NCBI GenBank assembly: GCA_964035545.1
Contig: CAXIUT010000239.1
Location: 1 to 35,868 of the forward strand
Reading direction: 5' to 3'
Source of the DNA: Bugula neritina
Taxonomy: Eukaryota; Animalia; Bryozoa
Length of the DNA: 35,868 bases
The position numbers were made by a program, and so were the translations under genes. Positions 10,338-35,868 of this stretch are shown here, piece after piece. Below the pieces are notes generated by a model. That model searched no databases. It was given only the letters and a program-made list of their open reading frames with translations, and was not told the DNA's origin. Numbering within the stretch: position 1 is the stretch's first letter; every line of letters begins with the position of its first letter.

Positions 10338-11491
10338 TCAAGTTCTCTCTGACAACCACTCTTGCATTACTTTTGCTACATCAGAAACGTGATCGTCCAG
10401 CCAAATTGCATGCCACATATCAAATATAATAACTGTAGTCTTATCAGTACAAGGACTGAACTTTTAGAGATCCAGGCAAGCAAAAGGATCCACCAATTTA
10501 TCACTTCCAGACTGAATCAATAAATAAGGAGTTTTAAAGTTTGAAAACTATTTACGAGTACGAGCCATTGCCATCATAATTTCCTGAACAGTTTTTGGAT
10601 AAAGCCTTCCATGATAAATGTAAGAATCACTTTGAGAATAACTATCCAGACGGTACTTTGATCCGTTTCTACCCGTTTGTTTTAAAAGCTGTTTGTAAGG
10701 AAATAATAATGAAAAGAGCATTGTTAATTTCTTTAACAGAGGATAATGCATTTTGTTTTACCTAAGAGAAGGACTTAGAAAGATAGCTCCATTTACAATA
10801 GAATGGTTCTTCAGAAGAAGATTAAAAGCAACTGCTCCTCCCAAACTCATCCCAGATAGATAAATCTTCATGTTTGGATTTTAAGATTTGACTTTGATCA
10901 CATATTGTTCAGCTATAGTAACTAACTGTTCGAAGGATTCAAGACAGCCTCGACGAGAACCTTCTGATTGTCCAAAATTGACAAAATCGAAACCTTTCAA
11001 TAGATATCCATCTTTAGACAGAGTACTAGCAATTTATCCGAATGTTCCAGTATGTCCATTGAGTGAATGCAAAAATATGATAACAGCTTTAGTTTTTTTA
11101 TTGTTTGGAGTCCAACTATATGTCATTAGTTTAGTTCCATGATAGTTCCATATTTCTTTATCAGGAAATATAGGAATTTGTCTTTAAAAAGAAAAAATAG
11201 ATTTTTTAAGACTTTTTATCCTCTACAACTCTTCATTTCTATCTTTAAATGAAATATTTTTGAAATAATCATAGTCTAATTGAAACTTATCTCGAAATTT
11301 TACCTCTTTAGAGTAACTCTTAACCTCTTTCGAAAAGCTATTTCCCAGAAGCGAGTGTAAACCTTTTAATAAAGTAAACTTCTGGTTTAGATTGATCCAT
11401 AGTCGAACAACTAACATAACTATCACATAAATATATCACTTACAATTAAAAATAAATCCAATAAGACTAACTATTTAGAGTATTCAGTCAT
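10338..11491 (-). CDS. Alpha/beta hydrolase, monoglyceride lipase/lysophospholipase (Hydrolase_4) family, ~377 aa
   Basis: IFLHSLNGH, GFDFVNFGQSEG, GMSLGG nucleophile elbow, QSGSDKLVD, MWH; triad intact. The 5' exon depends on an atypical 20-nt intron at 11420-11439; the alternative start is ATG 11417. Confidence 0.88.
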
Positions 11492-11539
11492 TAAAAGAGG
11501 CTTTTAAATATCTAGAACTTTCTTATACGTATAATATAT

Positions 11540-11802
11540 ATGTAAAATATCAGGCAAGTACCTTCAAAATTATATTGGTTCTTGTCCGCTATCATCGAAC
11601 TCATCCTCATCTTCTTCGTCTCCATCTTTAAACTCAACAAACCCTCTGACTCACTCACCTCAGATGACATCAGAAACCTCAGACGAGGAAATCAACCCGG
11701 CGGACATAACGGAAATGATTGGAGATATCAAGGATCAAGAGGTAAGTATCCTTTTATTTAGGTTCGACCAGAGTGCCCATGGGAGGATGAGGAGGAGGCT
11801 GA
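11540..11802 (+). CDS. SELENOK: Selenoprotein K, ~80 aa, Sec at TGA 11788-11790
   Basis: N-terminal TM segment LYWFLSAIIELILIFFVSIF, Gly/Arg-rich tail ending RVPMGG-U-GGG-stop, 20-nt intron at 11742-11761, downstream SECIS. Confidence 0.9.
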
Positions 11803-11819
11803 TTCGATGGTTGAGGAAG

Positions 11820-11897
11820 AGAAGGCGCTACAATTTCCATGATTGAGTTTAAAAAAACTCGAAAGAGCTTTAAACTCATGATAATTGAAGCTATTCT
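11820..11897 (+). promoter_or_regulatory. Eukaryotic SECIS element, type II
   Basis: A-UGAU (11839-11843)/UGAU (11879-11882) core, perfect 10-bp helix TGAGTTTAAA/TTTAAACTCA, unpaired AAAA, apical mini-stem CTC-GAAA-GAG, lower helix CAATT/AATTG, GCT/AGC, AGAA/TTCT. Confidence 0.92.
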
Positions 11898-11972
11898 TTG
11901 GTGATTCTTTATGATATAAGTTAGCAATCACTCTAGTATGAACAATTTTATTTGTTTTATTTCATATTTAGC

Positions 11973-12048
11973 TGGGGTTGGGGTTGGGGTTGGGGTTGGG
12001 GTTGGGGTTGGGGTTGGGGTTGGGGTTGGGGTTGGGGTTGGGGTTGGG
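11973..12048 (+). repeat. Internal telomeric tract T(GGGGTT)12GGG
   Basis: Perfect 76-nt tract between the convergent SelK and cyclase-like 3' ends. Confidence 0.97.
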
Positions 12049-18079: not shown

Positions 18080-18253
18080 ATCAATAAATAGTATTATCAA
18101 TGAAAAGGTTGTGAGTAATGGGGTTGGGGTTGGGGTTGGGGTTGGGGTTGGGGTTGGGGTTGGGGTTGGGGTTGGGGTTGGGGTTGGGAGTATTATCAAT
18201 GAAAAGGTTGTGAGTAATTACTTCAATAAATAAATGAATAAATAAAATAATAA

Positions 18254-35780: not shown

Positions 35781-35868
35781 TGGGGTTGGGGTTGGGGTTG
35801 GGGTTGGGGTTGGGGTTGGGGTTGGGGTTGGGGTTGGGGTTGGGGTTGGGGTTGGGGTTGGGGTTGGG
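35781..35868 (+). repeat. Right telomere T(GGGGTT)14GGG
   Basis: Perfect T2G4 repeats at the window end. Confidence 0.98.

Follow-up and report, generated by a model that had tools for sequence, protein, structure and literature searches.

The window, that is, the whole 35,868-nucleotide stretch of DNA that was analyzed, holds a two-exon gene of the selenoprotein K (SelK) type from a ciliate, with a predicted selenocysteine (Sec) residue and with three in-frame UGA codons, hereafter UGA1, UGA2, and UGA3, near the end of its coding sequence. In all likelihood, this is an expressed ciliate SelK gene, in which UGA1 is decoded as Sec through a SECIS element and followed by a glycine tail, UGA2 is the stop codon, and UGA3 is an unconserved accident. 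In this explanation, the expressed two-exon SelK gene lies on a mini-chromosome from the macronucleus of a ciliate in which UAA and UAG are sense codons. The ribosome would read UGA1 as Sec, directed by a form-2 SECIS located in a very short 3' untranslated region (UTR), would then add a tail of three to five Gly residues, and would terminate at UGA2. UGA3, situated in the 3' UTR, would at most catch rare read-through.

As a contig, the window comes from a ciliate macronucleus and has C4A2 repeats at positions 1-99 and G4T2 repeats at positions 35782-35865. Perfect G4T2 telomeric blocks are also found internally, at 11973-12048 and 18120-18185, in the same orientation as at the contig ends, and neither of them is followed by C4A2. 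A 4,060-nt assembled contig from run X1 spans 11300-11972 and continues for about 3.1 kb past 11972, with no end at the G4T2 block. These internal blocks may mark alternative chromosome ends, or else telomere tracts that were retained inside the chromosome.

The first-pass annotation of this DNA took UGA to be the only stop codon, and the window fits this view. When TGA alone is counted as a stop, 86 stretches stay open for 150 codons or more (versus 4 with the standard code), the longest of which reaches 872 codons, and the long ones each contain tens of TAA/TAG codons. Regarding the meaning of these two codons, codon 2 of the SelK gene (TAA, window 11546-11548) varies among the lineages, 10 of which have TAA or TAG and 3 of which have GAA or GAG, while a TAG located about 40 codons into the orthologous locus L025 stands opposite Glu or Asp in the other sequences. 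Both columns of the alignment, the only two that are informative, fit UAR read as Glu, as in a peritrich-type code.

On the forward strand, exon 1 of the SelK gene covers 11543..11741, starting with the ATG at 11543 and continuing with the TAA of codon 2 as a sense codon. It is separated by a 20-nt GT..AG intron (11742..11761) from the coding part of exon 2 (11762..11799), which provides (G)STRVPMGG, Sec, and GGG. An intron of comparable length occupies the identical site in the orthologs. When translated, exon 1 yields a single hydrophobic helix (LYWFLSAIIELILIFFVSIF), followed by a Gly/Arg/Asn-rich stretch. With UGA1 translated as Sec, the C-terminus reads ...VPMGG-U-GGG, and the protein counts 79 residues in the window form, or 81 in a form with five Gly codons that is described below.

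Several lines of evidence relate this product to the SelK-SelG family. Exon 1, compared with the Pfam SelK_SelG model (PF10961), gives an E-value of 0.0032 and 18.5 bits, which is sub-threshold (cut-off of 23.3 bits), the C-terminal exon being excluded because its reading frame passes a UGA. The same model matches six of the seven orthologs, with a best E-value of 0.0011, and the top three named ESM Atlas clusters are SelK_SelG, with scores of 0.85-0.88 that constitute a lead only. By inspection, the topology is that of SelK, with one 20-residue hydrophobic stretch near the N-terminus and a G/R/N/P-rich sequence behind it. An in-frame UGA lies near the C-terminus in the GG-U-G context (M-G-G-UGA-G-G-G) in all 13 lineages compared. 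The vertebrate SelK protein ends with Gly-Arg, its Sec standing in a GG-U-GR context.

The likeness to Selenoprotein K (SELENOK, SelK-SelG family, PF10961) thus extends to the small size, the N-terminal hydrophobic helix, the Gly/Arg/Pro-rich tail, the position of the predicted Sec a few residues from the C-terminus in GG-U-G, and the single SECIS in the 3' UTR. The ciliate family differs from SELENOK by its post-Sec tail, made of three to five Gly residues (or GGGM, GGGA), by the use of UGA as the stop as well, by its sub-threshold Pfam score, and by a SECIS core that is just 41-54 nt away from the predicted Sec codon. Among the selenoproteins of eukaryotes, SelK has one of the widest distributions (PMC2375036).

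Expression was assessed with the public runs found for the organism, none of which is registered as RNA, by comparing their assembled contigs with 11300-11972. Two contigs, of 375 and 364 nt, issued from runs X4 and X5 of different studies, lack exactly the 20-nt intron. The SelK gene is, therefore, expressed, since these two contigs match the spliced mRNA. They begin at 11544 or 11553, and both match the window as far as 11927, after which 3-5 letters have no counterpart. This shared end on the forward strand, which sits about 46 nt upstream of the telomeric G4T2 block, is probably the poly(A) site and the 3' end of the mRNA, in which case the entire SECIS lies within the transcript. Counted from UGA2, the 3' UTR is about 125 nt long. 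At the other end, the cDNA contigs begin essentially at the ATG (11543), which suggests a very short 5' leader.

Two other observations concern the region upstream of the gene. An AT-rich motif, ACGTATAAT in the window and in loci L001, L003, and L017 and TATA-like in the others, is located within about 12 nt upstream of the ATG. A 277-nt contig from run X6 (same study as X4) lies at 11386-11662 and comprises the upstream intergenic region together with the first 120 nt of exon 1; it may represent carried-over genomic DNA or a longer upstream transcript.

Positions 11779-11820 read ATG GGA GGA TGA GGA GGA GGC TGA TTC GAT GGT TGA GGA AGA. UGA1 (11788..11790), UGA2 (11800..11802), and UGA3 (11812..11814), all on the forward strand, end 48, 36, and 24 nt, respectively, before the AUGA at 11839-42 of the SECIS, and have G, T, and G at +4. 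The three TGA codons, their distances, and their +4 bases are, thus, seen in the sequence just as the first-pass annotation had described them. Between UGA3 and the base of the SECIS stem there are 4 nt. A fourth in-frame UGA (11902..11904, same strand), located 3' of the SECIS, would halt a ribosome having passed the three earlier ones.

The comparison with orthologs allows sorting these codons. A word search with exon 1 returned six proteins with 72-81% identity. Orthologous contigs (from ENA, Logan, and JGI) and a metagenome scan with an alignment, A1, led to 13 distinct lineages, including the window. Four loci from the metagenome scan (L026-L029) were discarded, as GC-rich chance matches to one short peptide. 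All lineages covering the region present the same succession, namely M-G-G(-G)-UGA, GGG plus G, M, A, or nothing, and UGA. UGA1 and UGA2 are present in 13/13 lineages, far beyond chance. UGA1, the predicted Sec codon, always comes after M-G-G and before conserved in-frame Gly codons, and UGA2, the predicted normal stop, comes three to four codons later (five in runs X1, X4, and X5). Between the two, GGA, GGC, GGT, and GGG interchange, the Gly codons of the 13 lineages differing at third positions only, and the stretch measures 9, 12, or 15 nt, i.e., its length changes in multiples of three only. In most lineages, the codon preceding both UGA1 and UGA2 is Gly.

Past UGA2, the sequences are unrelated among lineages, and the spacers between UGA2 and AUGA have lengths that fall into all three classes modulo 3. 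Another UGA comes in frame after 3 to 34 codons, and in most lineages the frame passes right through the SECIS. Because the synonymous, frame-kept conservation ends at UGA2, UGA1 is most likely the Sec codon and UGA2 the stop codon of the family, as judged from these alignments. This comparison supports the earlier proposal of a Sec UGA that is followed, a few codons on, by a UGA acting as the stop, with no alternative stop codon available. The regular spacing that had been pointed out, with a UGA at every fourth codon, holds in the window but is not a fixed feature. Runs X1, X4, and X5, which belong to three studies, have 6 extra nucleotides (GAGGAG) behind 11788, resulting in five Gly codons instead of three. 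This 6-nt difference at 11785-11799 is either an in-frame length allele of the GGA repeat or an assembly slip in the window.

The status of UGA3 is different. A close third in-frame UGA, at most five codons past UGA2, is found in only three to four lineages (the window, the close pair L002/L020, and L023). In the UGA2-AUGA spacers of the 13 lineages, four in-frame TGAs are counted versus two and four in the other frames, for what is a small sample. Since close third UGAs are rare among lineages and in-frame TGAs show no enrichment, UGA3 looks incidental and indistinguishable from chance. The UGA contained in the SECIS AUGA is in frame with the coding sequence in 5/13 lineages (L002, L003, L019, L020, and L023), which is near the one-third expected by chance; in these lineages, UGA2 read-through would stop there. 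The base following the codon was also considered as a signal separating Sec from stop, as the first-pass annotation had suggested. This rule did not withstand comparison: UGA1 is always followed by G, but the base behind UGA2 is G in 7 lineages, T in 5, and A in 1.

Downstream of these codons, a hairpin at 11819..11898 of the forward strand is a well-supported form-2 SECIS, predicted from its fold and from covariation in two alignments, A2 and A3, of 11 orthologs. It folds at -17.6 kcal/mol, with a z of -2.56, and displays the form-2 SECIS shape. From its base upward, it consists of a lower helix (11819-22 with 11895-98), which starts 20 nt before the AUGA, helix I (11827-29 and 11831-36 with 11882-87 and 11889-91), the AUGA itself (11839-42), facing a GA (11880-81) included in the 3' UGAU, a 10-bp helix II (11844-53 with 11869-78), an unpaired AAAA (11854-57), and a 3-bp mini-stem (11858-60 with 11865-67). 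The AUGA and the GA are those of the non-Watson-Crick quartet expected in the core of such an element. The AUGA, AA, and GA motifs are invariant in the 11 aligned orthologs.

Covariation is extensive. In A2, 85.5% of the cells are paired, versus 32-41% (about 40%) with slid partners, and 19 of the 22 pairs show compensatory double changes; the observed values were reached by 0 of 500 shuffles. Nine of the ten helix II pairs show compensatory changes, and pairing in the mini-stem holds in 93.9% of the cells. In the extended alignment, A3, 23 of the 26 pairs show such changes. The lower helix is paired there in 90.9% of the cells, with compensatory changes in all four of its pairs; in duplex-energy comparison with shuffles, it is not significant (mean z of -0.47). 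The lower helix was, thus, kept on the basis of A3 covariation, but counts for less than helices I and II. Helix II and the mini-stem were also obtained, independently, with RNAalifold. The presence of a genuine SECIS behind a SelK-type gene, as proposed in the first-pass annotation, is supported by the invariant motifs and by the covariation. That annotation had also considered that the absence of a conserved SECIS fold would speak against its reading; the fold is conserved in the orthologs.

A covariance model built from the alignment, R1, gives the window 80 bits, the window being among its training sequences, and a scan of 64 kb (the window and other loci) with R1 found no SECIS of this type beyond those of SelK. 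With the Rfam SECIS models, no match was obtained at the gathering threshold in the window, nor at E ≤ 10 in 11500-12000 (501 nt), the Rfam scans returning only chance snoRNA and CRISPR-like matches. In the AT-rich genome of Tetrahymena, most matches of RF00031 were apparently false positives (PMC1557398). The Rfam miss was set aside as evidence against a SECIS and treated as a sensitivity problem, the defining motifs and the covariation being present. ARAGORN detected no tRNA in the window, and hence no tRNA-Sec there.

The distance separating the UGA codons from the SECIS is remarkably constrained for sequences that have otherwise diverged. Over the 13 lineages, the end of UGA1 lies 46.4 ± 2.5 nt from the AUGA (range of 41-51 nt, and 54 nt in the five-Gly form), and the end of UGA2 lies 31.8 ± 2.8 nt from it (range of 26-36 nt). 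The UGA2-AUGA spacers are unalignable and fully diverged, yet their length is kept within this narrow range. With the stem base (AUGA minus 20) as the end point, the distance amounts to 21-31 nt for UGA1 (34 nt in the five-Gly form) and 6-16 nt for UGA2. The Sec codon, the stop codon, and the SECIS all fit in about 110 nt.

Much larger values are known from other systems. Natural UGA-SECIS distances in mammals range from 207 to 5207 nt (PMC3316567), and the stop-to-core distance is 124-138 nt in the thioredoxin reductases of Euplotes (PMC3737529). The minimum UGA-SECIS spacing determined experimentally on mammalian Dio1 is 51-111 nt, in the figures quoted by PMC3316567 and PMC3737529. This minimum concerns the same variable, and the SelK family described here is at or under it. 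The short and conserved UGA-SECIS spacing appears, from the aligned lineages, as the distinctive and noteworthy part of this SelK family.

Other readings of the three UGAs were weighed against the one retained here. UGA2, and perhaps UGA3, could be decoded as Sec too, giving functional isoforms with several Sec residues and biologically relevant U-GGG-U-FDG(-U-GR...) products, as the first-pass annotation had envisaged. The GG-U-GR context of UGA3 resembles the vertebrate SelK C-terminus, and all three UGAs are upstream of an intact SECIS. In SelL, one SECIS serves two close UGAs (PMC3316567), which offers a precedent. Nevertheless, the trait that characterizes proteins of the SelP or SelL type is absent, as neither the further UGAs nor the downstream coding sequence are conserved, a third UGA being found in 4/13 lineages at varying positions. 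The residues encoded past UGA2, the reading frame relative to the SECIS, and the distance to the next in-frame UGA all vary freely among the 13 lineages, and in the window, passing UGA3 would force translation of the SECIS up to 11902-04. Such multi-Sec isoforms, thus, found no backing in the comparison, and are highly unlikely. Rather than a Sec codon, UGA3 could be a selected, fail-safe tandem stop, catching the SECIS-driven read-through of UGA2. Tandem stops were reported as selected in stop-reassigned ciliates (PMC6879139), a nearby SECIS should increase read-through at UGA2, and L002/L020 and L023 likewise have a third UGA close by. However, UGA3 is missing from 9/13 lineages, neither its position nor its context is conserved, and the counts of TGA in the 13 spacers, a small sample, reveal no in-frame excess. 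A selected role for UGA3 is, therefore, rather improbable. The most radical reading is that no Sec is inserted at all, UGA1 being the plain stop codon of a Sec-less SelK homolog and the hairpin a different 3'-UTR structure. Some eukaryotes do have Cys-containing or Sec-less SelK homologs (PMC2375036), and the Rfam SECIS models gave no match. This is hardly reconcilable with purely synonymous changes in the Gly codons that follow UGA1, with a second in-frame UGA in all lineages, and with indels in multiples of three, nor with a hairpin that has all the defining features of a SECIS, including the invariant AUGA, AA, and GA motifs and strong covariation; the probability of this reading is minimal.

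With UGA1 as the predicted Sec codon and UGA2 as the predicted stop, two explanations of how the ribosome would tell them apart were considered. The first, which is the preferred one, is geometric. As known from toeprinting and footprint sizes, about 10 nt of mRNA downstream of the A-site codon are enclosed by the ribosome. When UGA1 occupies the A site, the core of the SECIS would be at a distance of 41-54 nt and the stem base at 21-31 nt, so that the folded SECIS, with SBP2 and eEFSec, would still reach the ribosome, leaving a free linker of 10-20 nt. With UGA2 in the A site, the core would be 26-36 nt away and the stem base, only 6-16 nt away, would be at or inside the mRNA entry channel; delivery would fail, and eRF1 would win. 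Such a geometric discrimination, which has close to an even chance of being correct, fits the conserved narrow spacing. Nevertheless, this narrow spacing may just reflect very compact UTRs, and is also compatible with a SECIS that, in a genome whose UTRs are very short, is pressed against its functional minimum. The second explanation is a plain kinetic competition, in which eEFSec and eRF1 contend for both UGAs and a minor read-through product is tolerated. Thioredoxin reductase normally ends with Sec-Gly-stop. If the Tetrahymena enzymes that PMC2612030 lists among the selenoproteins do so, their two UGAs would be offset by 6 nt, which a ruler would hardly resolve. In SelL, moreover, the single SECIS decodes two UGAs located two residues apart (PMC3316567), which also favors competition over a ruler. 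The two explanations are considered about equally probable. A stronger version of the geometric model is tentative and somewhat unlikely. In it, the SECIS of this family would be a molecular ruler operating at the shortest distance that physically allows Sec insertion in eukaryotes. A UGA would be recoded at 41-54 nt and not 4-6 codons farther on, at 26-36 nt, where the ribosome would already stand at the foot of the hairpin.

To frame the use of UGA both as the sole stop and as a Sec codon as a new paradox is an overstatement, because this use was already described for Tetrahymena in 2006 and 2008 (PMC1557398, PMC2612030). The SelK gene adds to known kinds of systems, and the general phenomenon is not new. 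With the thioredoxin reductase, glutathione peroxidase, and SPS2 genes (TrxR, GPx, SPS2) of Tetrahymena thermophila, it shares a Sec-UGA and a stop-UGA in one mRNA with no other stop codon available, as well as a form-2 SECIS with a similar AAACUC...GAG apical mini-stem (PMC2612030, Table 2). It differs by its UAR codons, aligned with Glu here and read as Gln in Tetrahymena, and by its identity, as SelK is not among the six selenoproteins listed for that organism. Position-dependent decoding of UGA governed by the SECIS is described for the thioredoxin reductase of Euplotes crassus, in the account given by PMC3737529 and the 2009 work that it cites. Both cases concern a ciliate in which one codon takes two meanings within an mRNA, depending on its position relative to the SECIS of the 3' UTR, although this is a prediction here. 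In Euplotes, the two meanings are Sec and Cys, and UGA never terminates, whereas Sec and stop are the meanings predicted from the sequence of the SelK gene. The literature search found no relevant paper on selenoproteins of the peritrichs, whose genetic code is the most similar.

Overall, a SelK with a well-supported SECIS is added to a ciliate lineage in which UAA and UAG are sense codons, and comparative data alone allow sorting three adjacent UGAs into Sec and stop. The gene is an unusually compact case of an old puzzle, UGA being used as Sec and as the only stop, with a spacing at or below the mammalian minimum. Its compact 3' end is suited to tests in small reporters, concerning both the minimal UGA-SECIS distance and the question of whether distance alone acts as the switch between Sec and stop. 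Should the ruler be true, this would be the shortest natural UGA-SECIS arrangement found in the literature searched, and would provide a natural system for studying minimal spacing, in which a single-stop genome lets UGA mean both Sec and stop within about 15 nt.
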